From: Podarcis muralis
Taxonomy: Eukaryota
Reading direction: 5' to 3'
Length of the DNA: 64,000 nt
Assembly (NCBI RefSeq): GCF_964188315.1
Contig: NC_135662.1
Coordinates: forward strand, 87,296,001 to 87,360,000
A model generated the notes under the pieces. That model worked only from the letters and a program-made list of their open reading frames with translations, was not told where the DNA came from and made no database searches. Shown here piece after piece: positions 510 to 29,508 of this stretch. The position numbers were made by a program, and so were the translations under genes. Position 1 is the stretch's first letter; every line of letters starts with the position of its first letter.

Positions 510-1871
510 ATGCTCAGAACTCAGGCCTTTGTGTTCTCCCTTCTCCTGGGACTGGAACTCCCCAAAGCAAAAGCCAACTGTAACTTTACAGAGTCCCAAC
601 GTCACTGTGTTTGTTCACTAGAGGCGAATAACTTCATTCAGTGCCTTCCAGCCACCACATATGAGCTTCGAGGAGGAAATCTGGAACAATTTGCAGGTTC
701 TTCTGGAATGAAGCCAAACCCACAGATAACTGACATTCTGGAGGCCCTGCTAGTTCGCAAGCTCATATTTACAGACCTCATTGTGCCAGAGGTTCTCGTG
801 CCAGGGTCCCTGCAATTTCTTTCCTACACGCAGGTCTCAGAACTTGAATTTGTAAACTGTACTTTCCTTAGAGCCACTGACTGGAGCCTCAAAGGTGGGC
901 TGGACTTGAAGGTTTCTTCCTTGCGCTTTCACAAAGTGACAGCTGCCCCCCTGGATGACAGACTGAACATGTCCCGCCTGAGAAGGTGGCTGGAGACCCT
1001 GCAGAATCTGACAGTTACAGAGTCACAAGTCACATCTGTCCCGTGCGAAATTAGCAAGATGTTCACATCGTTGCATTTACTGGATGTTTCGGGAAACAAT
1101 TTCCAGGACCAAACCATGAAGTCAACATTCTGCGAAGGGGTTTTCCTGCAACTCCAAATCTTAAAACTCCACCATAACAATCTGACCTCTTTTGAGACTG
1201 TGTGCAAGACTCTTGGCCATCTCAAGATGCTCACTCACTTAGACCTAAGTCAGAATAACTTTCAGCCCCGAGTCTTTTCCTCCTCCTGCAGGTGGCCACA
1301 TTCACTTCAAATTTTTAATTTGTCCAGTACAGGGTTAGAGCAAATAGGTAGCTCTCTGCCACCCAACATTGAGATATTAGACCTGAGTGCCAATAACATT
1401 TTTACCCTTGACTTCTCACTCCCTGCCTTGAAAGAGCTCTACCTGTCCAAAAACAGGCTGCAAACTGTTCCCTCACTTGACAGGCTTCCTAGTTTGCAGG
1501 TCCTCAGTCTTGATCAAAACCAGATCTCACAGCTTCCCAGCAACCATCTCCTGCGTCTGCAGAGCTTGAAAGCTGGCCACAATCTCTACAATTGCTCTTG
1601 TTCAAGGGATATCCAGGACTTAGCAGCAAAACCATCATTACTGCCTGATTGGCCTCAGGATTATATATGCCATTCCCCTCTCAATTACCAGGGCTCCCTG
1701 GTAAAAAATGCACATTTTTCATCACTGCAGTGCAAGGCTCTGGTCACTCGTGGCTCAATATTCAACTTGCTGATATGCCTTCACCTTGTTTTTCTGTTTG
1801 CTTTCAGTGCTACAATTTCTGGACATTTTCTTTCAGCAATTCTGAACTGTTGGGAATCGTCAGGGAGCTAA
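510..1871 (+). CDS. CD14: CD14-like leucine-rich-repeat LPS co-receptor, 453 aa, single coding exon
   Basis: Signal peptide; CD14-type N-terminus (C-x8-C-x-C...QCLPATTYELRGGNLEQF); repeated LxxLxLxxN LRRs; LRR C-terminal cap; hydrophobic C-terminus; no TIR domain. Splice acceptor TCTTTTCAG at 491-499 lies just upstream, so a 5' exon probably exists. Position next to SLC35A4/APBB3/SRA1 matches mammalian synteny. Confidence 0.9.
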   Translation: MLRTQAFVFSLLLGLELPKAKANCNFTESQRHCVCSLEANNFIQCLPATTYELRGGNLEQFAGSSGMKPNPQITDILEALLVRKLIFTDLIVPEVLVPGSLQFLSYTQVSELEFVNCTFLRATDWSLKGGLDLKVSSLRFHKVTAAPLDDRLNMSRLRRWLETLQNLTVTESQVTSVPCEISKMFTSLHLLDVSGNNFQDQTMKSTFCEGVFLQLQILKLHHNNLTSFETVCKTLGHLKMLTHLDLSQNNFQPRVFSSSCRWPHSLQIFNLSSTGLEQIGSSLPPNIEILDLSANNIFTLDFSLPALKELYLSKNRLQTVPSLDRLPSLQVLSLDQNQISQLPSNHLLRLQSLKAGHNLYNCSCSRDIQDLAAKPSLLPDWPQDYICHSPLNYQGSLVKNAHFSSLQCKALVTRGSIFNLLICLHLVFLFAFSATISGHFLSAILNCWESSGS

Positions 1872-4790: not shown

Positions 4791-6029
4791 ATGGATGCTG
4801 GGCAGGTGGGTACTGCAGAGGGGAGCCCTGCATGAGCTAGTCAACATGCAGGGCGTTGTAGAGAACACTCTTTTTAGGGAGCTGAGAACTGTTCTGTCTC
4901 CACTGCACCCTGCTCAATGTTTCCATCTTCTGCTAGAGCTCTATGTTGATATTGATGTCCACCAGAATTTGGGACCTGGCTGCCTGGTTGCACATGCCTC
5001 TCCAAAACAGATTCCCAAGAACTGACTCTCACTGGCACCCCAAACTGAGCTGTCTCTGCTGTGTTTCCTTACAGGCTGAACAGGAAGTGCGTGTTCAAGC
5101 AGCTGTGGGAATTCGACAGATACCAGGTATAGTACTCAACAGCTGGAGAATGGGAACCCGCTTTCTTTGGGGATGGCTGCATAGCACCAAAAAACTTTGC
5201 TGTATCCTATTCTACACTATTCCTTTTTCATATTGGCGAATTACATATAAGCAACAATAACATTTAGGGGAAACAGAAACCTTCTCTGCAGCCTACAGTG
5301 AGGAACGACCTCTTCTTAGCAAGAATAAAAATGGCCTTGAGGAGTGACATGTACAGATGTGAGCAACGAGGGACTAGCAGGAGTTGGCAAAAGCTAATTT
5401 TCCTTGTCCCATTTTTATTGATGGCACTTTTTTGTAATAGTAAAGATTGTCTTCCATTTTGACAACCCCTTCCTGCTTTCAGGTCAATGCTGCCTTCTTA
5501 CCATTGCGGGCTGTCTTCTCCTCTATTTCCATATGTGGTGTGGGAATAAATGTCTGTTGCCTTCTTGATCCAAGAATGTCTTTAGCGAGTAGTTACTAGG
5601 TACTGTTGCACTTCACTTCTCAATCCTGTCAATCTTTATTATGATTAGAAAATCTAGCTGAAACACTCTGCCATTGGCCCTAAACCCCTTGGCTTCATGA
5701 TGTCACCTAAAGGACCCAGCGTCCTTCAGAGACCTTTACAGAAAAGGTTGTGCCTCTCAGAGATTCCAGGGAGCCTTTGGGGCTGAGAGATGGACTACAT
5801 GTGCTGAGGCTTCAGGGTTCTTGTAAGATGCTAAGGGGGAAATGGGTGTTCCTAAATCAGCTGCATAACTCTTGATTCAGCAGTTCCACAGCTAACCCTT
5901 TAAAATAGTTTCTCTGCCGCAACTTCCACTTTATCAAACTGCACGGCAATAGTAGGCCACAAGCTTAACACGAGTCAACAGTGTGATTCACTGTTAAAGA
6001 GAGGGGTTCCCCAGGGAAAGCAGTAGGGC

Positions 6030-6076
<47 letters not shown>

Positions 6077-9000
6077 AGCATTCAGACATGCAGCTTTAAA
6101 GTATAAACCTGTACTTAGAAAGCACAGGGCAAAGTGTGAGTGAGTCTTTCCTTGCTCTTAATCTCTCCTGAGATTACAGCCAAAGGCAGCATGTGCTGCA
6201 CATGTTGTCTTATGGAAATCATGTAGACTTTACCAACAAAGGTTTCATTCAGCAAAGGCCACTTTAAAAAAACCTGTATTGCTTTCAGGTTCTGCCCATG
6301 TTATTGCTTTGTATTGATTCTGGCTGGGATACTTAGGAGTCATTTCCACTTGATCTCTTTGTGAATTGCCCCATCCCAGATTTTTCTTCCCATAAGGGTG
6401 GAGAACCTTTAATTAATAACATTATTATTCAGAAATGATAATTAATAAAGTCTCTCCCTGTGCCCATAGGATGCTGAAGAATAAGGTGGCTGTATTTCTA
6501 ATTAGTACTCTTGCTTGATGTTCCTTCCAGGCTCATTGAAACAAGACAGCTTCCTGGTGGTGAACAAAGATTCTAACCGTCTGATATTCATTAGTAAGGC
6601 AGACAAAGGAGTGCAGGTGAGAAAGCTCCCAGAGCAGGGGTACCCTCCAGATATTGTTGTACTCCAGCTCCCATCGCCCCCAGCCAGCATGGCCAATGGT
6701 CAGGAATGATGCTGTTGTGTTCCCTAGCCCTAACCCCATTCAAGCACAGAGGAAGACACCTCTTGGAATGTTGCCAGCCCCTGAGTTCTTCCAGGCCATA
6801 AGGCATTGCCTTATCAGATTCAGAAGACTCACTCTCAGGGCAGTCTCCATCACCTCAATGTCATAAGAGTCAATGGCCCCAAAATAAGGCAGTGGCCCTT
6901 TTAGGCTACAGACAGCTCCTTTGAGCGGATAGGTCCAACTAGTTCTAGGCTAGCCAGCCTTCGGTTGGCTATGGGAGATCTGTGCACAGCTTCTTTCTAG
7001 ACGCAAGATACATTAGCCAGCTTTCTCACAGTGATTTGCCCAAGGTCCTGACCGCATCTGCCTTGTATGTATTATCCCGTGAACCAGACACTGACGACAA
7101 AGAAAGATGGGGAAATTACTGGAAGGATTTGAGAGAGACCTCAAATCTTCAAGCACTAATTGAGCACTGCTGTCTCTTTCCAGGAAGGATGCTTCACCAT
7201 TGATGGAGTCTTCAGTCTGGACACTGGGCAGGTACAACATACCCAGGATATTGTTCTGTGCAGCCCTTGCAATATATAACTTGATGATGTGCTGAGCTAG
7301 GGTGGAACACTTGGTGCACCAATTTTGATTTCTGACATGACAGCTTTGATTTCACAAATGAGAGCTAGTTCTTAGGAAATTTTGAGAGGTTCAAGTCCCC
7401 ACCACCACAACCTAGGGCAGCTGTTGTGGCAGTGAAGTCTATAAATTAATTTTGCACTGTGTGAAGAAATACCTTATTTTGTTTGTCTTTTCTGCCAATT
7501 AGTATCACTAGATGTCCTGAGTTCTAGTATCACGGCAGAGGGACTTTATCTCCACCATGCATAATTTTATAAATTTCCATTATGCATTCCCCGGCCTTTT
7601 TTCTAAGCTAAGCTAAGCTACTGAGCTTTTCTTCCATGTGAAAATGACAAATGTATTAGCATTAGCAGCATAATTTGTTGCAAACATGTTCCAAAATGAA
7701 TTTGGGGGAGGATGTTTTCACTAAATTTTTCAACATTTAATTTGTAAAAAAGAAAAAGAAAAAAAGGTTCATGCTGTACAGTAGGTTGTATTCAGGGAAT
7801 AAACCAGTAAAGAGGGCTTCGTTTTGTCAAGTGTCTGGAGCCCTGGTACCTAACCCAAGGCCTTATCTGGGTTGATATGCACTAATGCTGGGCATGCAGA
7901 TTATCATTTTTGTCCTTCACTCCAGGACAAGCTCTTCCTGGAGCAGCTGCAACCTCTGCTGGACATGGTGCCTTTGGGCTACAGTGTGTCCCTGCTGGTT
8001 TGTGAAGCCCATCACGACGGAACCCAGACACAGATTCAAGCCTTTGTCCAGAAGGTGAGGGAGACTTCTATACTGTAATATGTAGTCATTATGGAATGAA
8101 ATTATGAACAGGGGAGGATGATACTGTAGATGGCACCTGACTCTTAGAAAGAAGGATGCTGCCTATGAGAGCTTTGTTCTTGTTGTTTAGTCGTTTAGTC
8201 GTGTCTGACTCTTCGTGACCCCATGGACCAGAGCATGCCAGTTACTCCTATCTTCCACTGCCTATCGCAGTTTGATCAAACTCATGTTAGTAGCTTTGAG
8301 AACACTGTCCAACCATCTCGTCCTCCGTCGTCCCCTTCTCCTTGTGCCCTCCATCATTCCCAGCATCAGGGTCTTTTCCAGGGAGTCCTTCTCTTCTCAT
8401 GAGGTGGCCAAAGTACTGGAGCCTCAGCTTCAGGATATGTCCTTCCAGTGAGCACTCAGGGCTGATTTCCTTCAGAATGGATTGGTTTGATCTTCTTGCA
8501 GTCCATGGGACTCTCAAGAGTCTCCTCCAGCACCATACTTCAAAAGCATCAATTCTTCAATGATCAGCCATGAGAGATTACATGCAGTTCATTCCCCATA
8601 ACACTGGGGTGGGGAACCTCAGGCTCAGGGGCTGAATGTGGCCCTCCAACGTTCATCCCCAGTCCAAACCCCCCACTGGCCCAATAGCACTTTGCCAGTC
8701 TACACGTGAAAGGCTTCAATTCCATTGCACACTGAGAAACTCACCACAAATCAGCTAAAAGGGAGGGCAGCTCAGAAAACACCTGATTGCATTGTGGGCT
8801 GATAATGACACCATTGGGCTGCTTTGTAATAGGTGAGCAAATAAAGTACTGAACAACAATTCCAAAAGGATGCAAAAGCATCAGTTGTAAGCAGCCACTT
8901 GTGTATGCAAGGCATAAACTCTGATGAGTTGCATTTTTCTTTCTTTCTCTCTCCCATTTGTCTTCAGGTAATAGAATCTGTCTTGCAAGAAACTAGCCCT

Positions 9001-12000
9001 GCCAAAAATAGTACTCAGTACCTCCAAACCATCACCTTTGTCCAGGTGAGCATACCTTGCATAGGGTGGCACCAGCTTTATGCACTCAATGCTCTTCCAT
9101 AAAAACATTCTTGTAAGTTGCCTGTGTCCTCATTGCTGTGGCCCATGGGCCACTGTCCCAAGTATCTGTTTGTTCTGCAAGCCATGGAAGCTGTATTTTC
9201 ATTTTGACTGATGTGACTATAATAGTTTTTGCCCTTTCGGGTTTGCCATTGCCATTTTCCAGGGTTCATCCCAGTCACAGCTGCATTGATACTTTTCTCA
9301 CATCCATCCCATTTCAGATCTACACAGATGGAAAGGCTCAAGACCTCCTCAGCCCCAGAAGTCAAGTCCTGCAGGTGATGGACCTCCCTCCGCTGGGGCT
9401 GTAAGCATCCAATTCCAAGGCTATGGTGTTGGATTGGTCTTTGTTGAGGAGGAGAGGAAACATTAGCACAGAAAACAGAGAAGAATCTGGGATTTCACTT
9501 TTTATTACTCAGAGATCAGGGAGAATTTCACCCAATGGAACAGAATATGACAGGGCTGTTCAACAGTGGAATGGACTCCCTTGGGAGGTGGTGGACTCTC
9601 CTCCCTTAGAGGATTTTAAGCAGAGGTTGGATGCCTATCTGTCATGGGTGCTTTAGTTGAGATTCCTGTCTTGCAGAGGGCTGGACTAGATGACCCTTGG
9701 TGTCCCTTCCAACCCTACAATTCTATGATTCTGTGAATGGCTGGGGAGGGTATGCACAAGAGGGTATGACTGGATGGTATGCACAAGAAATTTAGTTCAG
9801 ACAGATTACAGTTTATCTAAGACATAAGGAATGTGGATATGTTGTTGGTTTTCTTGTCCTGGCACTTTCCCTAGGAAAATCTGTGTTTTACCACTGAATC
9901 GGAGCAAACAGCAATCGGGTTTTTCCAGGAAAAGTGCCAGGGTAAAAAAACAACGCCCACCATCATGCTTGACCATGGAGCTGTAAAGCTCGGACCTGTG
10001 CCTGGAAAGGGTGGCGTAAATTCTGGATGAGCCCTGAGTTTCTGAGGTACCTCTAACTGCCTAATTAAGATGCCTCACACTATCAACTCTCTCCATCTCT
10101 CTTTAGGATGGTAGAAGAAGCGACTGAAGTAGTTGTGGCCAATTCACAAGCTGCCACTCATTGCTACTTGCAGGGGATGTCGTTGCACCAAAGTTATTTG
10201 CAGGAATCTTTCCAGAAGCAGCACAAAGCAGCCATGTAAGGGCAGCAGAAAGGAAAGTGCTCTTTTGAGGGGAAGAGAGCAGCACACACAGCTAACGCTG
10301 CTCAAGATTCTGACATTCTCTCTGATGCACCTTCCTGAACTTGGAGATCTCCACTCGAGAGGCCGAATATTCTCCTCCTGCAATCTGTGCCACTTGAGTG
10401 CCCCTCAGAAGTGTACTGGCCAGATTTTGGCCTTGCTCACATATGTGCAGCTCATAAGCTGCTTGCTTGCATCATGGACGTGCAGTTTAGCTTCAGGAGC
10501 TGCACAGTCACTGGTACAATCACTACTCTTTGGTGGAAAGTTGAGACTAAGTCAGCCCACACACTTTTTCCTGGTTCTTCCTAGGCCAGGGGTGGCCAGC
10601 TTGGTGCCCTGCAGATTATCTGAATGAGAACTTCCACCAGACCCAGTCAGCATGGCCAATTAGGATGGCAGCTGTAGCCCAGAACATTGGGAGGGCACCA
10701 CATTGGCGTCTCCTGCACTAGGCCTTTGGCTTCTGTGACTTACGATCAAAGATTTGCTTTTTAAAGCATCATCATGTCTTGCTGAACCCCAAGGCTATTC
10801 TTACTCATGATGACACAAGAATACTTCCCTGCCAGTCCTTTCAGTTTGAGGAAGGAAAGAGCTAAGAACTTGCACAATGCCTGCTAGGAACGCCCCAGGT
10901 TTTACAGGAATGCCACAGCCGTTTCACGTGTTTTTAGAATGTACACAGCAGCATCCCAGCAGTGAGCTGCCCCTTTAACTTATACACATTCAACCTGAAG
11001 TTTAACAGACACCCGTCCATCCAAAGTTGTCTCTTCTCTGCACATTTGGGACCTTGCATTTCCAGGGTTCGGATCTTACTAATTCAGTCATGGGGCAAGA
11101 GGTGGGGTGCTATTGCTTGCTGGGACTGTGAGGGAGAAGGGCAAGGGAAGCACTAGGTTGGAGGTGAGGAGCACAGATACACACACACTAGTGCCCCCCT
11201 GCTGCCACCAGCCCACTGCCTTCTGCACCTGGCCTTGGAAAACAGTCATGCACTGCACTATAAAAAGAAAAAATCTGATCTGGGAGGTAATCAGTAGCTG
11301 AAGCTGTAGCAGTCCTGGTATGCCAAGGAGTTCCAGAGTATACCAGTCTGTCTGGATGAGGGATGTTGCTTAGGGAAGCAGTGTAGGATGAGGCACATCA
11401 ATATCTGGCAGAGACCTTTGCTTCACCCGACAGCAGAGCCGGCCCAGGGTCAAGGAATGGCACCATCAGGCAGTTTGTTGATCCACTGCCTATCATGCCA
11501 CTAACTCTATCTGCTTGCTGGCTTGTTTATGAGACACCTCATAAAATAATTTGTCTAGGGGGCTGTACATATAAAAGAGAACAAAAATGTAACAGTAAAA
11601 CCACACTAATAAAACCAAATTAAACTTAAGAGAATCAATCTCCAAAAATAGCACAGCTGTATTAAAAATAACAATTGCCCTTGCAGGTGAGAAAGGAAGG
11701 CAGGAAAGGAAGTGGCAGCCTTTTGTCCAAGTGACTCCAAATCTTTGCCTGGCTTAGAGAGGCACACACATTCATTCATTCATTCATTGACTGCTCTTTT
11801 GTGCAAATCTGGTATATATTAAAAACTTGTATTTCATTATTTTTCTTTTAAAAGGGGTGTGTTCATAGCTGCAAATGCATGTTTGGATACCCACAAAGGA
11901 ACTCAAGTGTTCCTTTGCATGTTTGGATACCCACAAAGGAACTTAGCAGCGACCCACATACATTTTTAAAACTACTCCTTTGTGCAAATCATATACAGTA

Positions 12001-15000
12001 TGCATATGCATGCAAGGAAATGTAAAAAAGGGGTTGTATTAAATGCTGTGCTAGCAGAGGTCCACTGGTGCAAGAGGACTTCTGTTTCCTCTTCCCTCTC
12101 TCACCCTGCCCCCAATGTGCCCTCGAAATCTGCTGTGGAAGGTTCTGCAACCCTCCAGAGCTGATACTGAGGGTGCAGAGCGTGCTGGAAGTGACAGGAA
12201 AGGAAGTTCCATTGCAGACACAGAAGTCCCTTGCACAGCAGAGCTGCAGTGTTGGTTTCATTCCTCATACTTGCATGCATGCCAGACCTCAGCTTCCAGA
12301 AACTTACAGTGAGTGGGGAAATACTGAGGGGAGAAGGCAACACAAAACCACACAAAAACCTCCCATCAAGCACCGTCCAGGAAGCATCAAGGTATATTTT
12401 GGAAGTATATACTTGAGTGCACTCATATGTGGGCAAAGGTGCACATATGTGCACATGGAAACAGCAACCCATGTATGCATTAACACCCTAGTCTGGACGC
12501 AGCCCAAGTCATACATTGGTCCATATAGCTTAGGGCTGTTTGCTCCATCAGGATTCCTGATGCAGGTTGGAAGAAGGCCTTCCATTATCCTTTCCCTCAC
12601 TGCCATTCCAGAACATTGCAGAAGCAGAGGCGAAGACAGCACTGGAAATTACACAGTGGAGCATTAACAGTGAAACTGAGTTGCACAATTAGGACAACAG
12701 CTTTATGTAAAACGTAAATGACAATGGCCAGATACTGGTAGTGGGAGCTTAGAGATGGCAATTCTCACCAATCTACCCAGACCATCCTAACCTTCTCTTT
12801 CCTACCTTCCCCCTGAGATGTGGCAACCTCTTCACCATCACCATGGAGACAAAAGCAGAGGGTGGTCAGGGGCTTCAGCGTGCTGCTGTCAAGATCTTTG
12901 AGTTTTCTGGAGGGAATGAGCAACACTCAGCTGATCCGTGAGTATGGGGTGAGCCTCAGTAGAGGTCAAGCAGATTATCAGAGAATGCGCAGGAAGCACA
13001 AGGCCTCCTTTTCTGGGAATGTGTAGCCCCTAAATCTTTGGTACTGGGGCACAGTCACCTTCACCGCTCAGCCAAATGAATTCTGCTTTAAGAAATGTGC
13101 TTATTCTCTGCCTGCTGGCTGATCTGTTCCTTGCTGCTCCTTTTCTGTACAGTTTTTTGCCTCTTTTCCGAGCTTCATCTGCTGCGGCACTTCCTGCTGA
13201 CACAGAGTTCCCCTGCTGGATGCTGAAGCATTTGCTGGAAGAAAATGCCCTCACCTTCCTGCTGTTGTGCCTCACCCTGCCAGGTACCACAATTACACGT
13301 ATCGTTTTCTTTTTCTGTATGATTTTGAAGGAAGGTTGTTTTTGCTGTAGCTCGTCAAGCACTGTTCCCTTCTCAAGTACAGTGGTACCTCGGGTTAAGT
13401 ACTTAATTCGTTCCAGAGGTCTGTTCTTAACCTGAAACTGTTCTTAACCTGAAGCACCACTTTAGCTAATGGGGCCTCCCGCTGCTGCTGTGCCGCCGGA
13501 ACATGATTTCTGTTCTCATCCTGAAGCAAAGTTCTTAACCTGAAGCACTATTTCTGGGTTAGCGGAGTCCGTAACCTGAAGCGTATGTAACCTGAAGCGT
13601 ATGTAACCCGAGGTACCACTGTACATACATGTTCCATGATCTGATTGTGAGGCTTGTTAGTTTTTCTCCAAAGACCTGAAAAAGGCTCTTGTGCCTGAAG
13701 TAGACAATGTCTCCATCCATTAGATGGGGAAAGGATACAGTACTCTGCTTCTGGGCGCTTCCTTACCTCAGGCTTAAAACAGTTTAATATTAATCTTGGG
13801 ACCCTGAGGATTGCAGTTCTGTGACAGGGAACTAAGGTTCTTATCACTTTACCAAACTACACTTCCGTGAGTAATATCAATTTATTATCAATTTACAGCA
13901 TTTTCATACTCCCCATTAACAATTCATTCTCTAGGCGGTTTGCATTATTCAAAAAATATTGTGCTTTGAATAAGTAAGGTAATTTTTTGTTCCTTGTTTC
14001 TTTTATTCTGGTGTGCTGAGCTGATTCTGCCTCTTCACTGCAAAAGGGAACCGGAGAAACATCTGTCTTAAAAGCCCTAACATTTTAAAAACTCACAGGA
14101 AGTGACTGTTTCAACCAATGTGAACCATGGTTATGCAATGCATTTTTTCCACTCTGTCTTATAAGCAGCAGTGGTTGTTTTTCAATGGAATTGGTAAGAA
14201 AAAACATTGCCACAAATACATAGCCCCAACATTTACTCAACCACTCTGAGGCCAAAATATTAGCAAGTACATAGCTTGGATTTGTTTCTTCATAAAACAT
14301 ATAGGGCAGATGAATTCTTAACATAGGTTGCAGCTTGAATATAAAACCAGCCTGCTTCTGCACTGCAGAATTTAAAATACTATAAACAAGCTAGAATCTG
14401 TTTGCTCCTCCTTGAAAAGCCGCAGTTTGAGAATTCAAAATCACCAAACTGGGACTGTTGTGTAGGGTTTTAATATTTATCCTTTAACTAATGAGCAGTG
14501 AAAAATGCTAGCTAGATATTTTTTAGGCCAATGATAAGATTTCTTTGCCTGTTGAAAGCATGAAGGAAACAGCGCAAACCAAGTGGGAAGTGGCTGCAAG
14601 TGTATACAGGTAATCTTCACAGCCAGGCTGAATAAACGCAGCCCAGCAGGTGGGTTCTAATGCACTCTGCTGCCACTTGCACGAGAATAAAACACTGCAA
14701 TTCTCACACAAATAACGGTCTGTGTAAAAGAGTTTTAAAACTTTACTACAATAGCTTTATAAAACAAAAACTACCGCCATGAAATATAAAAATACAACAT
14801 GAACATAAAAGTAAATACATATAAAATAACATCAAAATAAAACAAGTTTAAAACTTGTGGTTGTAGGATAGTTATCCTTCTCGTGTTGGTTCAGATCCAG
14901 CACAAGTATATTGCTTTATTTTATTAGCAGGAAAGGCAGTTAGTCTCAGTAGCCCCTGCTGGAAACTGAGTGGCACCTGTTTAATCTGGAAACAAAATTT

Positions 15001-15008
15001 TTGCAGAG

Positions 15009-15052
<44 letters not shown>

Positions 15053-18000
15053 AACTTAGTTCTTACCTTTCCTCTGCTCTGTCTAGGAACAGTCCACATT
15101 TTAAAGCACAGGGTCTGATTGCCCTTTTGCATTTCTTTTTTGCTCTGGAGCTTCCTCTGCAAAAACCCGCTTTTTAAAGCTCAGTTGGAGCAAACAGCAA
15201 TAATGGAAAACCTGAATTGATGTCCAAGTGCTAAAGAGCAGGGTTTTTTTGCAGGGAAAGCTCTGGAGAAAAACCCACACACAACCAAATGAACACTTGG
15301 ACATAGAGCGTTTAAGCATGGACCTGTACTTGGAATGAGCAAGGCAAAATATGTGTGGATAAGCCCACAGTGTGTCTTTATCAGAGATTTAAAAGAGAAT
15401 GATGTTTGCCTCAAGTGGTGACTACTGCTCTAGAGGCCAACCAAGAAACCCAGATGTTACAAAGTCTGGCTGAGAGTTTTGTGGGGTTTTTCCCAGATGC
15501 TTCTGGAGAAGAGATACGGTCTGCCATCTCACTGACTGAACAAGTGAGGACTGTGACAAAGAAAGTGGCACCAGTCCATTGGGATCCCATGCATGAGGCT
15601 CAGAAACGAAGAGAGGTGATAGGAGAGCTGAGAGCCCAGCTGTCCTTCAGGAGTCGGGTGGAGCAGGAGAGCATGCTCAGCCAGTTGGAGAGGGTGATCA
15701 AGGAGATACAGGTAACTGTGCAGCATCAGCATACAGCGATACCTTGGTCCATTCCGGAGGTCCGGTTGTAAACCAAAACAGGTTGTAACCCAAGGCGTGC
15801 TTTTGCCAATGGGGCCTCCAAAAAAAATATTGGTTGTAATCCAAAGAGAGAGAGGTTGTAATCCAAAAAACAGGGACACACACTTCAGGGTTTGACGTGC
15901 TTGTAATCCAAAATGGTTGTAATCCAAAACGGTTGCAAACCAAGGTACCACTCTAGTTGGTATGAACTCTGCATAATGAAGTATTTGCCAGAAATCTCAT
16001 GCAGCCAGAGTTGAAAGGCCATGTTTGAAGCACAATATTCTGGACTCGCAGAAGACTGGGCAGTTGACTGTAGAATCTCTCAGGCACTCACAAGAATGAT
16101 CTGCATTTAATGGACAGTTATCTGAATTAAAGCCTAAATAAGTAGAACACAGCCACCCATAGAGCTCTGCTGGATCAGACCAACAGAGCATCCTGCCTCC
16201 CAAAGGGACCAGCCGGATGCCTCCAGGGGTGTCAGAAAGAGGAGCCCTCTACTGTTAGTGCTGCCTCGCAACTGGTATTCCATGGGATACTGCCCCCATG
16301 TGCGAGAGTTTCACATGGCCATAATGACTAATAGTTGATACAGGACTTGACAGCTGTGAACATGTCACATTGTATTCTAAAACCAAGTTTATTTGCTATA
16401 TAAGTACATCTTGTGGCAGCAAGTTTCATAAATTAATTAGGCACCAATTAGTTTCATGGGTGGATTCCAAATTTTATTATAATGAGAAAAACTTATGTTC
16501 ACTTTCTCTACACCATGCATAATTGATAAAACTCTGTGTATCTGAAGAAGTGTGCATGCACACGAAAGCTCATACCAAGAACTAACTTAGTTGGTCTTTA
16601 AGGTGCTACTGGAAGGAATTTTTCTTGTTTTGACTATGGCAGACCAACACGGCTACCTATCTGTAACTGATAAAACTCGAGTGTGTGTCAGCCCCTGTCC
16701 CTTAGATTCCCCCCCCCCCCCTATGTTATAAAACCTCGAACACATTAGCCTTTCATTGTAGGCAAGGTGCTCCAGTCCTCCCTGATAATTTTGGCTGCTC
16801 TTTCCTTCACTTTTCCAAGTTTACAACATCCTTTTAGAGATGGGACAACTCAATTTATATGCCATGTTCCAATTGCAGCTGCACTGTAGGTTTGTCTGTG
16901 GTCATTGCAATACTGAAACTCAGTTTTAGTCTCAGTCTGTTTCCTAGTTATCCCTAACATTGAATTCATCTCACTAAACTAAATTAAAATTAAAATTAAA
17001 CTGTAATATTACTATTTTCTGCTTATAAATAGATATATAAAAGATTTTGAAAAATGTTTAGCAATTTAAAAACAAGTTAATTTTGAAAATGCTAATCATT
17101 GACCAGTCTCTTACATTTTAATTATGGTTTCTAACCTATGTGGGGGGTTCCTCTCCTTAATTGCACTGTTCCCCCCCCCCCCGAAAATCAGTAAAGTCGT
17201 ACCTTGGATACTGAAAACCTTGCGACTCAAATGTTTTGGCTCCCAAACAACGCAGACCTAGAAGTGAGTATTCTGGTTTGCGAATGTTCTTTGGAACCTG
17301 AATGTCTGACGCAGCTTCCGTGGATTCCGATTGAGTGCAGGAAGCTCCTGCAGCCAATCAGAAGCCGCACCTGGGTTGCTGAACGTTTTCGGAAGTCGAA
17401 TGGACTCCCAGAACGGATTCCGTTCGACAACCAAGGTATGACTGTAATAAAAAAAATGAAAATTCAGACATTTAAAAAAATCTGAATGAAAAGTGGTTTT
17501 ACAGTAAATTATATTTCTTTAAATCAGATCAGAACATACGATTTGGCATCCTGGATCAGGTCAGTTCTGTTTCCAAAGAGGCCAGTCAAGTACTTCTGGG
17601 AAGCTCAACGGTGGGGAATGGAGGCAGAACTCCCTGTGTTGTTTGTCCCCAGCTGCCCCTGTACTCCAAGTTTTTAATTTAGCTGTTATAGTGATTCAGA
17701 TGCTACATTTTACTGGCTTAGTAGTTGACAAGGAATCTTATGATGCATTCCATGAAGTGCTTTTGAAGGGATATCCCTTCTCTGGTTTTAAAAAATCAAG
17801 GGGTTATCTCACAATCTCTTAGGGTACACAGTTGTGGTAGATGTGCATTTGTGTAGGTTGAGGTACTTTCCAAAGCTCTGAGCACAGGGCTGGCAAAGCC
17901 TTCTTTCTCTCGTTCCCATCAGCTGACGGGGAGGGGAGAAGAAGGCTGCATTTTGCAAACATCAGCTCCATGAGGGAGAAGTCCCTTTTAGAGCTGATGC

Positions 18001-18240
18001 CTGCAAAAACCCAGGGCTGCTTGATTTGGCTTCGTGCGCAGATTGGCTTGGAGGCTGGAGGTTTCCCCACCCCTAGTCTAGGAATAGCATAACCACTGGC
18101 TTAGACTAATCAGTAGGTTGAATATGTTCCATAATTGAGTGAACTGGTAAGACAATCCTGGTCCACCTGTTGCTTTGTGTTGATTTCTGTCACCTGGCAG
18201 AATGTGGCAAAAATGTAAAGTACAATGGGCTGCCCAGAAC

Positions 18241-18291
<51 letters not shown>

Positions 18292-21200
18292 AATTTATAT
18301 ACTATCATTCATCCATAGGGCGGTTCACAACAACATTTCTGTGTCTCCATGTTGCAAGAAATTTCAGATAGGGTTGGCGCTGTGGGTAAAACCTCAGCGC
18401 CTAGGACTTGCCGATCGCATGGTTGGCGGTTCGAATCCCCGCGGCGGGGTGCGCTCCCGTCGTTCGGTCCCAGCGCCTGCCAACCTAGCAGTTCGAAAGC
18501 ACCTCTGGGTGCAAGTAGATAAATAGGGACCGCTTACCAGCGGGAAGGTAAACGGCGTTCCGTGTGTGCTGCGCTGGCTCGCCAGATGCAGCTTGTCACG
18601 CTGGCCACGTGACCCGGAAGTGTCTGCGGACAGCGCTGGCTCCCGGCCTATAGAGTGAGATGAGCGCACAACCCTAGAGTCTGTCAAGACTGGCCCGTAC
18701 GGGCAGGGGTACCTTTACCTTTAGGGGTTGGTTCGAGTGTGTGTGCATGTGTCCCTATGCGAAGGATGCTGGCAGGAGAGAAATGAACTGCACTTTAAAA
18801 CTCACATTGTGCCAACTCAGGGCCAGTCCATCCATGAGTCAGCTGCCTCAGGTGGCAGAATCCAAGGGGCACCCCCATGGGCATGCCTCCCCTCCGTCCC
18901 CGCTGCCAGAAAAGCAAGGAGAAGCGCCTGTGGCAGCTTCCGGCTTCCAGAAGATCTTGGAAGCCACTGCTGCCATTCAGATTCATTGAGTCCTTCTGAA
19001 TGGCCATAGAAACTAGTGGAGATGGTAACCATTTGCATGGTTTTGCTTGCTAACTGTTTGGCTATTACAGCAGGGCTGGGTGGAGGGCTCCAAGAAGCGT
19101 GCCCACAATAGCTGTAGACTATTTTGAGGCTGAGGAATTGGGATCAACTGTTTTTAAGGTTCTGAAAAGCCAACGCTGGAAGAAAAAGAAAGAGGCCTCA
19201 GCATATGAAGCAAAGGATACTTCTCCTGAAGGCAGAGTAAGTACTTCTCAGGTATTTCAGCTTATCAGACCCACCCTGTAACCTTAGGGGAATAAATGTT
19301 CCTCTCTGTGTGAAGGGGGTTCAAGTTAGAGAGAATTCTGTTAAGCTACCAGTATCATCGCCACTCCGTATTTTGAATCACTTGACTGTGTTCCACTTCA
19401 GGGTAAAATTACATCAGATATGGATGATGGGGGTGAACTTGGGAATCAACAAGATGATACACGGCAGGACAAAGAAACATCAGGTTTGAAAACAATTCAA
19501 GGCCGGAATTACTCTGTACCTATCTGGAGGTGAAACAGCTTGATAAATATATAGATAACTCATTGATTTGTAGGATAAATGAAACGGTGAGTGATCTTTA
19601 AACCACAGGACAACAATAAAGGCATGAAATAGATAAACCATCCAAAGGCCAGGATGAACAGTTGCAACCTAAGTTATCTGCCAAAACATGTAAAGTGCCA
19701 GGCACACTCCTATGAGAAAGGAGTTTCATAGTTTGGGGGCTGCCACAGATAAGACCCTGTCATGAGCCATCACCACCCTGAGCCTCTAAAGGTGGCAGCA
19801 CTGCCAAAGCTTCCCCCATTGATTTCAATACCCAAGCTGGCACATATTGGGGGAGGCACTCCTTCAGAAGTTTGGGGTCAATGTTATTTAGGGATTTATA
19901 CATTAAAATAAGCACCTTGAATTGACACAATTTTCAGGATACATGTACTATGAATCCTTTCTGCCATGTCAGACACCATCTTGGCTGCTGCACTCTGCAC
20001 TAATTGTGGCCTCCAAACCATCATCAATGGCAGCTCCACATAGAGCACATTGAAACTGTCAGTAGCCTGTCAGCAGCCTGTAGGCTACTGGAGCATGGAA
20101 TATAGTGTCTCAGAGATGCTGTAGCTGGTGAAACAGCTGTAGCTGAAAGTAGGCCTAGCCACCCCGGCCACATGGGATCTTCGTTAACAATGGTGGATCC
20201 AAGAACAACTAACAGGTCACCACAACACCTCCCAGATTCAGGAAAGCAATCACACAAAATGCTAAGAACTAATAATTCACAAGTGCTAATTCATAAAGTT
20301 CTGCTGCAGAGTACTGTATATAAGAAGCAAGTATTAGGAGATAATGAACTGAATGCTAATACAGCTGCAGTTGAGATCACAGCCTGATATCAATCACACC
20401 TGACTCACCCAGGTCTACCTGGCTGTCATCACCCTCCATTCCCCCGCCCCCATGGACCATCTCTGGCTACAATCTCCACTCATGGGGCCCTGCCTGTGAA
20501 TCGCCCAAAAGACCCTTTGGTATTGCCCTTTCAGCTCCTACAGGAAGCAATCAAGGGAAAACATGAAGTGTGGAAAAGAAATATGGAGAGAGAGATGGTT
20601 TTACAGTATAAAGACCTGTGTATGTAAACAACACGCTGTATGGCAAGACGTACTAATATAAATCGGGTATCTTTATATGGCGGGGGGCCCCAGGAATTGG
20701 TACATTTTATTTCACCATACACAGCAAGACATCCCCTTCCTTGTGTCTAAATATTGTCTTATTCCTCCTTGCTACTAGCTTTCTTTCATACAAGACTTGT
20801 TTCTGACAGGAGGTGGCAGCATCCCAAAGATCCAGCTTGAGCAGGTTGGTGTACTTCAAAGTGCCATGGAAGACAAACCTTTCACTGCTGCAATGCACAG
20901 AGCCAGAGACTTGAGCGAGGCAACCAAATCATCCAGCCCTGTAAGTGACGTGTGGGAGTCTCAGACCATGGTCTGTGCCTGAATCCAAGTCCTCAGAAGA
21001 CTGGGAAGATTTGATTTCACCACCAGCAGTGAGATTTTTCAAGTGCAATGCACTTGAATTGCTTGTGAATGTAGCAGGGGATCCTGAGTCTACAGTAGCT
21101 CACACCTGCATCATGGAATATGTTCCCTCAATGTAGACCATTTTAATAATTGCCCATAGAATACTGAAAGTATGTGAACACTTCAACAGCTTCTCCCCTA

Positions 21201-23461
21201 AACACTTGTGTGAACTACTTTTAACTACAAGTAGTTGCATGCTGGGACGCGGGTGGCGCTGTGGGTAAAAGCCTCAGCGCCTAGGACTTGCCGATCAGAA
21301 GGTCGGCGGTTCGAATCCCCGTGGCGGGGTGCGCTCCCGTCGCTCGGTCCCAGTGCCTGCCAACTTAGCAGTTCAAAAGCACCCTTAAGTGCAAGTAGAT
21401 AAATAGGGACCGCTCTGGCGGGAAGGTAAACGGCGTTTCCGTGTGCTGCGCTGGCTCGCCAGATGCAGCTTGTCACGCTGGCCACATGACCCGGAAGTGT
21501 CTGCGGACAGCGCTGGCTCCCAGCCTATAGAGTGAGATGAGCGCACAACCCTAGAGTCTGGCAAGACTGGCCCGTACGGGCAGGGGTACCTTTACCTTTA
21601 GTTGCATGCTAATTGAAACGTAATATGAACAGAGGCAGCCACACACGGCATGCATGGTGATTTCCAGGACATCCGTTCAACCCCACCCCATTCAATGGTT
21701 TGTACCAGGGACATGAACGTGGCCACAGCGTCATAGACAGCCTCCAGCTGTTTGCGTTTTTAAGTAGCAACCACATGGCTCTATGCACGTAAAAACTGGA
21801 CCTTAGAAACAAGGGCCCTGGCTTTCTGTTTTTTCCCAATCCTGTAGCAGGAAAAGCTTTGCCTGATAATGTTTTGCATAATTCTTAAAGGCACAGGAGG
21901 GAGCAGAAACAGCCCCAGACCACAAATATTTCATGTGCATACTTTATGTAACTTAATGCACTCTTGCAAAGAGATTGAGCTGTATGAACAATTAAAACCA
22001 GAGAGTGGAGATTTGCTTTGTGAGCACTTATTGCAGTACTTTGGACTGTCTTCCTGCGCTGCTCTTTTTCAGAGCCTGGTTGGTGAGCAGCACCAAGACA
22101 CAAAGGGGAGCTTCTCTCAAGCAAAAACCCGGTGGCAGGTTCTTCAAGAGCAACACCATCTCCTGATACAACAGGAACTTTTGAGAATGGAAGAGGAGCT
22201 GGCAAGGCAAGAGGTGAATAGTTCCTGTCTGTGATGGCAGGAGACTAACTTATCAGCTCCTTGAGGAAGCAGACTGTGTGTGGGAGAGAAACATACAGCA
22301 AGGGAGGGCAGATGAGCCAAGGGCTTTCCCACCAATCACACAATGCTGGAACCAGTACCAGGAATTAACATCGTAACTAAACAAATTCCAAACCTCTGTT
22401 TTATCTGTTCCATAGTCTGCAGTCCCACAACAACTCATCTGAAAGGTTCTTTCTCTTCTCAAATTGCAGCTTCCTCCAGGCCAGCAAGGAGCCATGCTCT
22501 GGCAGAAAGAAAAGTCTTTGCTGATTTTGCGCATGGAGGCATTGCAAAGAGAACAGGCAGAAGCAGAAAGGGATCTGGAGGAGCTGTACCAAGAATGCCA
22601 GCGAGAAACTGAAACACAAAAACAACACATCCTGCAGGTCAAGAGAGCTGTCAGTTCAAACTCATCCTGGGGAAGGGTCCTTCTGAGTTTCAAACCAGCC
22701 ATTGTTTGGTAGCCCCTTTGAGATGGCAGGTTTAAGCTCAGAACTAGCTCTTTTGTTTCATTGTTTGGAGGCTCAGTGGGAACTTTCAGATTCAGGGAAT
22801 CTTTAGGAGGGACAGACCTCTAGTGGCAGCATCAGATAAGGGCTTCACTTGATTGCGTGAGAGAAACAGCAACCCTCTGCAACATTAGAAGTTTGAAATA
22901 AATATCAATATAGCTGACAGCTTAGCAGCTTGCCTGAAGGACTAAAACACGTGATTCCAATGGCATAACCTCCTAAAGAGCCCAATTGATTTTTCTTTTT
23001 TTGGAGCTGGAGCAAGAAAAGTCTATGTTACAATAAAAACCCTGCAATTCCTTTATTTATTGGATCACTGGGATATCTCTCCATATATATACTTGCTCTG
23101 CAGGGCAGCAGTAGAGAGCACAGTTTCAGTTGTCAGGCCAGGCTATTTCCTGTTGAATGTGTAAGAGAATGGGAGAGTTCATGCCTTTCCATGCCTTGAC
23201 CTCTCTCTTTCATCTACTAAAAGGCTTGTTGAACTTCCTCTACAGGTATTCCAGGCTTATAGGAAACATGCTGAAGAGCATATAGATGTCCTCGAACAGA
23301 GATATCGAAAGCTGCTCCAGGAGTCCCTTCAGGATGCGGTTCTCCTTTCCACTCAGAACCAGCAACTACAAGCTCAGAAGCAACTGGGCTACATGGAGAA
23401 AGCCACCCAGACTGACTTCCAGACCCTTACGCAGAGCCACGAGAGAGCCTCCCCATCCTAA
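4791..23461 (+). CDS. Uncharacterised kinesin motor-homology plus coiled-coil protein (degenerate kinesin), 17 coding exons, 633 aa; probable orthologue of mouse E230025N22Rik
   Basis: Manually spliced exons: 4791-4805, 5075-5126, 6531-6616, 7184-7231, 7926-8054, 8968-9045, 9318-9400, 10107-10235, 12818-12937, 13153-13283, 15497-15711, 19159-19236, 19402-19483, 20810-20940, 22073-22213, 22470-22637, 23246-23461. All introns are GT-AG, all phases match, and the total is 1902 nt with no internal stop. Kinesin scaffold motifs occur in order: [20 protein letters not shown]...[84 protein letters not shown]. Start GCCATGG is a strong Kozak context. Exons 1 and 12-14 are less certain than the rest. 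Confidence 0.82.
6031..6074. repeat. (GAAA)n microsatellite
   Basis: Pure tetranucleotide run. Confidence 0.95.
8178..8560 (-). mobile_element. BovB (RTE-clade) LINE 3' fragment
   Basis: Minus-strand translation [41 protein letters not shown] is the BovB RT C-terminus. The characteristic end GTCGTGTCTGACTCTTCGTGACCCCATGGAC is present. Confidence 0.88.
9545..9735 (+). mobile_element. CR1 LINE 3' end
   Basis: [30 protein letters not shown]2 terminus, then GGACTAGATGACC...CCCTTCCAAC and an ATTCTATGATTCT tail. Confidence 0.85.
13380..13621. mobile_element. Tc1/mariner-superfamily MITE (same family as 3198-3422)
   Basis: TIRs CAGTGGTACCTCGGGTTA / TAACCCGAGGTACCACTG, TA flanks, internal sequence shared with the 3198 copy in reverse orientation. 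Confidence 0.9.
15009..15052. repeat. (TAC)n microsatellite
   Basis: Pure trinucleotide run. Confidence 0.95.
15734..15953. mobile_element. Decayed Tc1/mariner-type MITE
   Basis: Ends CAGCGATACCTTGG ... CCAAGGTACCACTC resemble the CAGTGGTACCTTGG TIR family; internal GGTTGTAA(T/C)CCAAA repeats. Confidence 0.65.
16538..16575 (+). ncRNA. Minimal type I hammerhead ribozyme motif (Penelope-like element terminus)
   Basis: GTAT-CTGAAGA-A-GTGTGC-AT-GCACAC-GAA-AGCT-C-ATAC: 4-bp stem I, intact CUGAnGA and GAAA cores, stem II, palindromic AGCT in place of stem III, CUC cleavage triplet. Confidence 0.75.
16538..16670 (+). mobile_element. Penelope-like retroelement terminal fragment
   Basis: Hammerhead motif followed by TTAGTTGGTCTTTAAGGTGCTACTGG, a terminal sequence I recognise from reptile Penelope-like repeats. 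Family assignment is from memory. Confidence 0.55.
17193..17444. mobile_element. Tc1/mariner-type (Tigger-like) MITE
   Basis: Inverted ends AGTCGTACCTTGG / CCAAGGTATGACTG with TA at the right end. Confidence 0.65.
18244..18290. repeat. (ATT)n microsatellite
   Basis: Pure trinucleotide run. Confidence 0.95.
18371..18722 (+). mobile_element. Sauria SINE
   Basis: tRNA-like head TGGCGCTGTGGG...GGTTCGAATCCC, body shared with the copies at 21244, 49540 and 58022, ACCTTT tail. Confidence 0.92.
21244..21600 (+). mobile_element. Sauria SINE with target-site duplication
   Basis: GGGACGCGGGTGGCGCTGTGGG head, (ACCTTT)n tail, flanking duplication GTTGCATGCT. Confidence 0.93.
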
Positions 23462-27920: not shown

Positions 27921-28892
27921 CTATTTGATTCCATAATAAAAGTAAACAGCGAAGCTAATCAGCAAAACAGAAAGGAAAAAAAAGGTGGTTAGATGAAGAC
28001 CAAATAGGAGGACAGAGAGCAAAGCATTAACCATAATAGAGGAGGAGATCACAAAGAGTCTAGTGATGTTACTACTGTGCTTCATGACCACAGACATTAT
28101 CAAGCCATTCAAGGCTTGACTCACAATAATTAACAGAACCCAAAATGAGAAACCCTCCAGGAACCCAGCCCCTGAGCTGCTTGACAGATGGATGATTATG
28201 TTCAGCAAAACACCAAAAAAGTAGAGAAATGCATTTTGGAGGTTAAGAGGCAGATCCTGGGTCTTCAAGACAACTTCAGTGTAGACTGCTGAAAGGCCAG
28301 AGATCAGGCAATATAGAAAGATCAGCACTAAGCCAATGGGGGTGATGTGCAACTGCATGTCAGAAGCAGGCATGTGCTGTGGGTCCTGCAGGCCTCCATA
28401 TGTATAAAAGGCTCCAGCAGCAATCAACAAGAAAAGAGCTAGCCACTTGCGGGCAGTCAGTCTTTGGTGCAAGAATATGCTGAATAGGAGGGCGGTGCTT
28501 CCAATTTTCAAGTTGCTGAGCACTTGGAAGGTACTAGGATCCATGAACAGCTGCAAATGAACTACTAAGTTGTTGTTGGCTGCATAGAGCAATGCCGAAA
28601 GAGCAAAGGGAGCAGCATGATGCCATGACACAGATAGCTTTTGTTGTCCACAGCCCCAGATCATCAGGAAGACTAGTGAGAGCATCAACTTGGTTAACTC
28701 AATCAAAACCACCACAGAGGAGGCACTGAATGGGATCTGGCCATTTTCTTTACAGAGAGTCAGGAGTGGTGCATGGGAGCCATAGATAAAAACAGACAAG
28801 ATCAGCATCAGCCCCCATCGGATTTTCCCAAGTACGACAGCAGCAGCTGGGCTGACCCGGCTATCACCAGTACAAGTGTTGTCAAATAACAT
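27921..28892 (-). CDS. SLC35A4: Probable UDP-sugar transporter SLC35A4, 323 aa, intronless CDS
   Basis: Hallmark segments YGSHAPLL, APFALSALLYAANNNL, MDPSTFQVLSNLKIGSTA, LHITPIGL, VMKHSSNITRLF. First true ATG is at 28892; the ORF-track start at 28925 is a TTG lying in acceptor-like sequence. Confidence 0.96.
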   Translation of the reverse strand: MLFDNTCTGDSRVSPAAAVVLGKIRWGLMLILSVFIYGSHAPLLTLCKENGQIPFSASSVVVLIELTKLMLSLVFLMIWGCGQQKLSVSWHHAAPFALSALLYAANNNLVVHLQLFMDPSTFQVLSNLKIGSTALLFSIFLHQRLTARKWLALFLLIAAGAFYTYGGLQDPQHMPASDMQLHITPIGLVLIFLYCLISGLSAVYTEVVLKTQDLPLNLQNAFLYFFGVLLNIIIHLSSSSGAGFLEGFSFWVLLIIVSQALNGLIMSVVMKHSSNITRLFVISSSIMVNALLSVLLFGLHLTTFFFLSVLLISFAVYFYYGIK

Positions 28893-29508
28893 TTCTCTGA
28901 AGTGTGGAGGCAAGGGAAATATCAACCTCTAACTTTTATAAGAGGAGAAAAATGAAGTTAATATAGGGTTTTTTTTAAAAAAAATAAAATGTCATACTCA
29001 TGGAAAGGCAGAAGTATCCAATGAATCAGAGCAATATGACACATTTGTGATGAGATTCACATGTCAGTATAATATGTATGCATGATTAAGAAAAGGTTTG
29101 GACAATGTGAACCACTCAAGCCACATTTTCTGGGTACATGAAAGGACATGGGGTGGGTTCCAGTTTAAAGCTGGCAGGCATGATGACCCAGCAGTTGCTC
29201 TGTGTTCCATCAGAATGAGAATCCCATCATGTGAGAAATGCAGCTGTCCGAGTTGATAGTCAGGAACCATCTAATCCCTGGATGGCTGAAGCAGCCACCA
29301 AGACTTTTCATGATTGAATGTCTGAGAATACTTACAATCAGACCTGCTGAAATTTCATCTCATCCAATATAAAAACACTTCAGATTGATATGACTGGTGA
29401 AAGGGGAGCAGCAGGAGTCATTTCTGACATAAATTGAGTTTACATTGTTTAGAAAGCCTAATATAAGAGGGGTTTTCTGGAGTGTATTGCTACATGAGAT
29501 TCTATATT

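Follow-up and report, generated by a model that had tools for sequence, protein, structure and literature searches.

What remains of a kinesin when its catalytic apparatus is gone? The question is raised by a locus of the lizard Podarcis muralis, which lies in a window of 64,000 nucleotides (NC_135662.1, positions 87,296,001 to 87,360,000 of the forward strand; all coordinates below are those of the window). An initial annotation had picked out the stretch 7926–13283 as a kinesin motor domain with all nucleotide-binding motifs replaced, and had proposed a pseudokinesin of the Vik1/Cik1 type, serving as partner of another kinesin, as a static microtubule tether or as a regulator. We find that the stretch comprises exons 5–10 of a 17-exon gene that is single-copy, intact and under purifying selection. 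Its product carries a kinesin head at the N-terminus (an N-kinesin layout); sequence and structural models together give good support to the view that this head is ATPase-dead, and the protein is probably an uncharacterised non-motor scaffold or adaptor built on coiled coils.

Is the protein a kinesin at all? A Pfam search of the six single exons gave no match, the exons being too short. Joined, they form an open frame of 223 residues, which is 97.8% identical to an annotated ‘kinesin KIF17’ of Podarcis lilfordi and matches a true kinesin that carries PF00225 (P0061) with an expect value (E) of 5e-8. PF00225 itself was detected on the orthologues at E 5e-18 (frog, 65 bits), 1e-16 (axolotl, 61 bits), 5e-11 (turtle, 42.5 bits) and 1e-7 to 2e-6 (lizards), mostly over the first half of the profile; with a gathering cut-off of 29.3 bits, Elgaria passed at 31.4 bits and the Lerista orthologue, at 27.1 bits, fell just under. 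A profile built from 16 orthologous heads matched 127 distinct PDB sequences, the best being KIF4 (E 2.9e-20), and the best 60 of these 127 were all kinesin motor domains. Kinesin homology is thus far beyond chance.

The fold was approached through the P. lilfordi protein, whose head and neck were modelled with AlphaFold2 from 31 orthologues only. The model has a kinesin fold, with a predicted local distance difference test score (pLDDT) of 80.5 and a predicted template modelling score (pTM) of 0.84. Foldseek returned kinesins at E ∼1e-19 (1.7e-19) with template modelling (TM) scores of 0.6–0.77. Structural alignment with VIA-align gave Z 26.1 and a root-mean-square deviation of 3.0 Å over 288 residues, the kinesin matches overall lying at Z 23–26 over ∼285–300 residues at 3.0–3.5 Å. 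Comparison with kinesin-1 and Vik1, which the initial annotation had put forward, divided the two: human kinesin-1 with a docked neck linker was among the tied best matches, whereas Vik1 was absent from the 50 best structural matches. The 30 best fold matches in Swiss-Prot were ordinary kinesins only. The head is therefore predicted to keep the three-layer alpha/beta fold of kinesins. PDB scores single out no one parent subfamily: the family profile scored best against KIF4, the axolotl head against KIF13B and the frog head against kinesin-8, a few bits apart, so that KIF4, KIF13B/KIF1A and kinesin-8 lead by turns with the query.

Within this scaffold, the catalytic motifs are gone. Motif positions were taken from the alignment of the family profile to KIF4. 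Where the P-loop should read GQTGSGKT, the window encodes EAHHDGTQ (E94–Q101, 8004–8027); KQHKAAIC stands in place of the switch I sequence NSQSSRSH (10216–10235 plus 12818–12821) and EFSGGN in place of the switch II sequence DLAGSE (12900–12917). PYRDSKLT is replaced by PADTEFPC (13193–13216), with acidic and hydrophobic residues where the basic ones should be. In addition, the interval from switch II to helix alpha5 is 18 residues long in the family as against 39 in KIF4, so that ∼20 residues of the L11/alpha4/L12 region are missing, and helix alpha4 is cut to a 7-residue remnant (249–255) in the AlphaFold2 model. The profile match to KIF4, the PF00225 matches and the model bear out the earlier description of a kept scaffold with replaced motifs, and the motif strings quoted there were correct to within one residue of register.

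The loss is common to all 31 orthologues compared. The pattern GxxxxGK[ST] occurs in none of the 31 aligned heads, and the switch II position reads EFPRGA in turtles, VSLGAT in an owl and QLSEKS in frogs. Fragments persist in the axolotl alone (P0011, Ambystoma mexicanum), the least decayed member, which has GKDSPEKT at the P-loop, MRGDGRQPGI after it and DLQG, in the context DLQGVN, at switch II. Across the 31 species, variability within the head peaks at the positions of P-loop, switch I, switch II and L12 (entropy 1.9–2.2; switch I, 2.0), while beta3, beta8 and alpha6 are the most conserved (0.8–0.9; 0.8–1.1 when alpha5 and the neck linker are included). Conservation is inverted relative to what is expected of a working motor, the catalytic loops being the most variable parts.

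Missed exons that restore a P-loop or a DLAGSE motif had been named at the outset as the finding that would overturn the idea of a dead head, and none was found. Contigs from P. muralis runs X1 and X2, whose RNA nature is recorded as a guess, carry the joints 8054>8968, 9045>9318 and 9400>10107, all GT..AG and exactly at modelled exon borders. Exons 5–8 are thus joined directly, which leaves no room for an overlooked exon between those that hold the P-loop and switch I positions. A six-frame scan of the gene span revealed no Walker A, SSRSH or DLAGSE-like string other than GLAGVGKS, in a short open frame of intron 2 (5371–5394). We rejected it as a catalytic exon; it lies upstream of exon 3, the wrong place for a P-loop, and is a chance match. 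In the whole window, three Walker-A-like strings were seen in six frames, as against about five expected by chance in a hand estimate. With its P-loop and both switches lost, together with ∼20 residues of the L11/alpha4/L12 region, the head very probably binds no nucleotide and cannot step, and the original proposal that it cannot hydrolyse ATP is supported to that extent.

A gene that has lost its catalytic motifs may simply be decaying. An exhaustive HMMER search with exon 11 identified 19 relatives, from lizards, turtles, crocodilians, birds, frogs and axolotl, the family proteins being 500–700 residues long. Lacerta, Zootoca, P. lilfordi and Rhineura share conserved exon sizes, which for the head exons are identical. 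Ratios of non-synonymous to synonymous substitution (dN/dS; Nei–Gojobori) were 0.19–0.26 for the head among lacertids and 0.37–0.45 against Rhineura, 0.16–0.28 for the C-terminal coil and 0.27–0.38 overall. The deficit of non-synonymous changes relative to neutrality was significant in binomial tests (head against Lacerta, P = 6e-6; whole coding sequence, P = 7e-8 to 3e-13). Conservation in the protein is strongest at beta8 and alpha6, in the neck linker and in the C-terminal coil. We rejected a pseudogene, unitary or processed: the reading frame is intact over 17 exons, splice sites are canonical, introns are retained and dN/dS is below neutral.

A tree of the heads matches the species tree with strong support, separating amphibians, turtles plus archosaurs, and squamates, and contains no duplicates. 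Since the tree follows the species tree in this way, the catalytic loss is older than the amphibian–amniote split, and the gene has been kept as a constrained single copy ever since. No mammalian member was present among the named matches of the exhaustive exon-11 search, and sauropsids and amphibians were the only sources of matches in word-indexed protein searches, for which the queries were the family alignment, the frog protein and an amphibian alignment; the last of these gave three rows and has little bearing on fish. The human CD14–SLC35A4 interval is not known to hold such a gene. No confirmed fish member was found. In AlphaFold database clusters, the best match, once a family member at 51% identity is set aside, is A0A6P8VKH9, a 459-residue ‘KIF17’ with 22% identity over residues 1–364 (E 1e-23); it scores clearly above ordinary kinesin clusters and may be a fish relative.

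What, then, might such a head be for? Its place in the molecule is informative. In the model of the full-length Lacerta orthologue, the head (residues 1–308) is followed by neck-linker strands (311–319), neck helices (321–374), a disordered stretch (379–466, pLDDT below 30) and helices 462–506 and 511–630; in round figures, an N-terminal head of ∼310 residues, a disordered linker of ∼90 and a C-terminal coiled coil of ∼165. The P. lilfordi model places strands at 311–314 and 317–319 and helices at 321–339 and 344–364, with the linker docked, and aligns through the neck to KIF13B and KLP-6. The predicted layout is that of an N-kinesin, with an N-terminal head, neck linker and neck coil in that order. 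The neck linker carries the W-D-P sequence: among the 31 species, W319 and P321 are invariant and D320 nearly so, and K312, R329 and R336 of the neck linker and neck are invariant too. Residues D145, L146, L162 and G163, encoded by exon 7, are likewise invariant. Dimerisation through the coiled coils is likely; a homodimer prediction for residues 286–372 of the Lacerta orthologue scored 0.00, which counts neither for nor against it.

This conserved neck is one ground for supposing that the protein is the inert partner of an active N-kinesin of the kinesin-2, -3 or -4 kind, joined to it through the neck or stalk coil and tuning its stepping as Vik1 and Cik1 tune Kar3. In the model the neck takes the docked position seen in ATP-state kinesin, the neck of the axolotl protein can be aligned to the neck coil of the kinesin-3 KIF13B, and there is a precedent in the non-catalytic heads that make Kar3 processive (PMC4338441). 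Set against these points, the Vik1 and Cik1 heads bind microtubules, whereas here the alpha4/L12 region has shrunk to 18 residues from 39, and the head is placed at the other end of the protein. We consider such a role unlikely. In its most specific form, a dead head found throughout tetrapods, its linker docked, would pair by the neck coil with an active kinesin-2- or kinesin-3-like motor in a one-engine heterodimer, the N-kinesin counterpart of Kar3–Vik1, and the mode would have been lost in mammals; this we regard as somewhat less probable again, but a heterodimer of that type would be the first of its kind.

The initial assignment to a Vik1/Cik1-like class is not supported in that form. 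Vik1 and Cik1 have a motor-homology domain that lacks the elements for ATP binding and hydrolysis and is carried on a coiled coil (PMC4338441), and to the extent of having a dead head on a coiled coil the lizard protein resembles them. In Vik1 and Cik1, however, the domain is C-terminal, binds microtubules and acts within a kinesin-14 heterodimer (PMC4338441), whereas the lizard head is N-terminal and has a neck linker of the plus-end type. The relation is one of analogy, not membership.

A second kind of precedent is offered by KIF26A and KIF26B, which lack IFAYGQT, DLAGSE and ATPase activity and still bind microtubules (PMC3387196). By this example, the head would be a rigor-like, static microtubule binder that anchors cargo or a signalling partner on the lattice. 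Conservation of the alpha5 and alpha6 regions and the basic patch that follows the neck, in exon 12, would suit such a binder, as does the microtubule association of KIF26B in spite of its missing motifs (PMC3387196). In this family, however, a helix of 7 residues is all that is left of alpha4, the main microtubule-binding helix, and of the loops that flank it; PADTEFPC has replaced PYRDSKLT with loss of its basic residues, and the L12 position is among the most variable. From the model, canonical microtubule binding would be impaired, and we judge a KIF26-like anchor to be distinctly improbable; the static tether suggested by the initial annotation has become less likely with the shortened interval before alpha5 and the remnant of alpha4.

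KIF26A/B (kinesin-11) nevertheless precede the lizard protein as ATPase-dead vertebrate kinesins without IFAYGQT or DLAGSE, and the lizard protein is not the first of these. The two differ in that KIF26 keeps its microtubule association and is present in mammals, whereas the present family was seen in no mammal here and has a truncated alpha4 region. KIF26 did not figure among the 30 best Swiss-Prot fold matches, although the two may yet be related. At ∼1900–2100 residues, KIF26 proteins are also much larger than the 500–700 residues of the present family.

The reading that we favour remains the non-motor scaffold or adaptor: the head would serve as a rigid module, structural or protein-binding, and not as an engine, in a protein likely dimerised by its coiled coils. 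The tail carries the motif KATQTD (23393–23419), and the Q-T-[DP] tail is kept as AIQTD in Lerista, AAQTD in Hemicordylus, AMQTD in a turtle and TTQTP, at the very end, in chicken and owl; it is absent in frogs and axolotl. From its sequence, the motif fits a TQT site of the LC8 type, in amniotes only. A scaffolding use of a kinesin head also has a parallel in KIF7, a non-motile kinesin-4 of Hedgehog signalling whose kinesin-fold head is described in a preprint as a scaffold, not a transporter (bioRxiv 10.64898/2026.02.06.704517). In a comparison with the axolotl head, KIF7 reached E 8e-6, below many other kinesins. KIF7 keeps its nucleotide site and binds microtubules.

Several observations weigh against this reading. 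A head dN/dS of 0.2–0.45 is far looser than expected for active motor domains, and selection may act only weakly on some of the head. Contig depth over exons 5–8 is low (2.7–4.7), in the two runs of guessed RNA nature, and bulk RNA-seq runs X13 and X14, of which ∼12% was sampled, gave no exon reads, only reads on intronic repeats. Expression of the gene is weak or tissue-restricted in these data, and the evidence for it is thin. Finally, database models from Hemicordylus, chicken, emu and Chamaea (P0001, P0009, P0057 and P0018) start in exons 7–9, so that the greater part of the head is absent; in Hemicordylus, the isoform joins a different first exon (MHLRR) to exon 9. Such models are either real short isoforms or incomplete annotation.

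Could the head be an evolutionary relic, drifting and dispensable, with function confined to the neck and the C-terminal coil with its TQT tail, and with isoforms that start downstream perhaps skipping the head? The truncated models would be explained in this way, as would a lizard–frog head identity of just 33–37%. So too would the two contigs that run from within intron 9 (215 nt) exactly to the donor of exon 10 at 13283 (12943–13283), namely record 6 of X1 (890 nt, depth 11.2) and record 14 of X2 (528 nt, depth 24.1), which are 3–5 times deeper than the contigs over exons 5–8. They reflect either retention of intron 9 or an intronic start. If the intron is retained, the frame halts at once, with SADP followed by TGA; an ATG at 13076, in frame with exon 10, would yield a head-less protein. 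A relic is nonetheless difficult to reconcile with a head dN/dS significantly below 1, with the preservation in lizards of the frame and size of all 11 head exons, and with a fold that is predicted with confidence from orthologues alone. Moreover, the head is alignable from frog to bird, which neutral drift since the amphibian–amniote split would be expected to preclude. We regard a purely relic head as very improbable, the least probable of the alternatives considered here.

Two further features of the RNA runs may be recorded. Compared with the window, both of the intron-9 contigs have 7 extra nucleotides, inserted after 13066. Introns 5 and 7 hold repeats (8081–8623 and 9529–9890) at which the summed depth of the runs is enormous on both strands (word depth up to 110,000), with many variant letters; these belong to an interspersed repeat family that is abundantly transcribed, and not to the gene.

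The complete gene lies on the plus strand at 4791–23461, with a coding sequence of 1902 nt (633 residues plus stop); the model was extended from the six central exons with orthologous proteins as guide, and all acceptors are AG and all donors GT. The initial annotation was right that the stretch 7926–13283 is coding, in that it comprises six real exons, but the head, encoded by exons 1–11 (4791–15711), extends beyond it on both sides: the GIRQIP sequence that was read as part of it lies in exon 2, and exon 11 supplies the last helix and the neck linker. Exon 1 (4791–4805) encodes MDAGQ, its ATG being followed by a GT donor, and a first exon of 15 nt is also found in Lacerta, Zootoca and P. lilfordi. 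Exon 2 (5075–5126), bounded by AG and GT, encodes strand beta1 with GIRQIP (5108–5125) at the RxRP position; it has a 100% tblastn match to orthologue P0049, and its size of 52 nt is kept in four lizards. Exon 3 (6531–6616; AG/GT, 97% match to orthologues) supplies N-terminal beta strands of the head and exon 4 (7184–7231; AG/GT, 100% match to P0049) the kinesin FxFDxVF strand, which aligned to KIF4 from residue 46 onward in the profile search.

The six central exons follow, their motif positions again those of the profile alignment to KIF4. Helix alpha1 and strand beta3 come from exon 5 (7926–8054), as does the dead P-loop position; the donor of this exon takes part in the first of the RNA joints given above. 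Exon 6 (8968–9045; AG/GT) encodes helix alpha2 and strand beta4 and has RNA joints on both sides, as does exon 7 (9318–9400), with loop L7, beta5 and L8. Helix alpha3 is encoded by exon 8 (10107–10235), which is entered by the third joint and also holds KQHKAA (from 10216), the first part of the dead switch I position. Exon 9 (12818–12937; AG/GT) contributes beta6, beta7 and the dead switch II position. Exon 10 (13153–13283), the second stretch aligned on KIF4, encodes the short alpha4 remnant, alpha5 and beta8, and the RNA contigs end at its donor. In the lead-in to alpha5 within this exon (13193–13216), the window has TEFPCW, whereas P. lilfordi, Lacerta and Zootoca have TGFLCW, two replacements specific to this lineage.

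Exon 11 (15497–15711) encodes helix alpha6, the neck linker with W-D-P (15580–15588) and the neck coil. The acceptor is placed at 15497 because CLTLP is followed directly by DASGEEI in all orthologues and no homology is seen before that point, which is query residue 25; an upstream extension to 15416 was rejected on these grounds. The intronic segment 15416–15496 stays open in frame and mimics the kinesin alpha6 (ETLSTLRFA) helix, a trap for reading by eye, but by the orthologues it is non-coding. Exon 12 (19159–19236; AG/GT), with tblastn matches to orthologues P0037 and P0038, encodes the end of the neck helix and the basic patch. The disordered linker is encoded by exon 13 (19402–19483; AG/GT), which is acidic and is absent from the Zootoca model, and by exon 14 (20810–20940; AG/GT, 93% match to P0037). 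The C-terminal coiled coil starts in exon 15 (22073–22213; AG/GT, modelled helix 462–506), continues through exon 16 (22470–22637; AG/GT, 93–95% match to orthologues, modelled helix 511–630) and ends in exon 17 (23246–23461), which has an AG acceptor and contains the KATQT tail motif and the TAA stop.

The gene is flanked upstream by a gene for a CD14-like leucine-rich repeat protein of 453 residues (510–1871, plus strand) and downstream, on the opposite strand, by one for an SLC35A4-like nucleotide-sugar transporter of 334 residues (27921–28925). The same CD14-like and SLC35A4-like neighbours are found in the same order in Lacerta agilis, with a DUF4535 open reading frame beyond the transporter. 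A run of 135 N at 61152–61286 marks an assembly gap or a masked stretch.

How does the family stand among kinesins? It shares with the active N-kinesins (KIF4, KIF13B/KIF1A, OSM-3/KIF3, kinesin-1 and KIF15) the fold, clear homology (E 3e-20) and the N-terminal position of the head, and with kinesin-2, -3 and -4 in particular a neck linker that ends in x-D-P and leads into a neck coil. Unlike them, it has lost P-loop, switch I, switch II and ∼20 residues of L11/alpha4/L12, and its pattern of conservation is inverted, the catalytic loops varying most. Full-text literature searches returned no paper on this family. We conclude that it is an undescribed orthologous family of dead N-kinesins, observed in amphibians and sauropsids, with none seen in mammals.

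Kinesin heads without ATPase activity are rare and instructive, and the head of KIF26 can act as a signalling scaffold. The family described here adds a third, independent case to Vik1/Cik1 and KIF26, in which the catalytic apparatus has gone while the fold, the neck linker and the coiled coils have been kept. It has been retained in amphibians, reptiles and birds since their common ancestor, and the fact that it seems to be missing in mammals would account for the lack of attention to it. The family also carries a warning, in that motor activity cannot be transferred as an annotation from a Pfam kinesin match alone; the automatic names given to its members, which besides ‘uncharacterized protein’ include KIF17, KIF3A, KIF4A, CENP-E-like and kinesin heavy chain, are misleading in just the way that the initial annotation had anticipated. 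Because orthologues are present in Xenopus tropicalis, axolotl and chicken, experimental work on the family is directly feasible.

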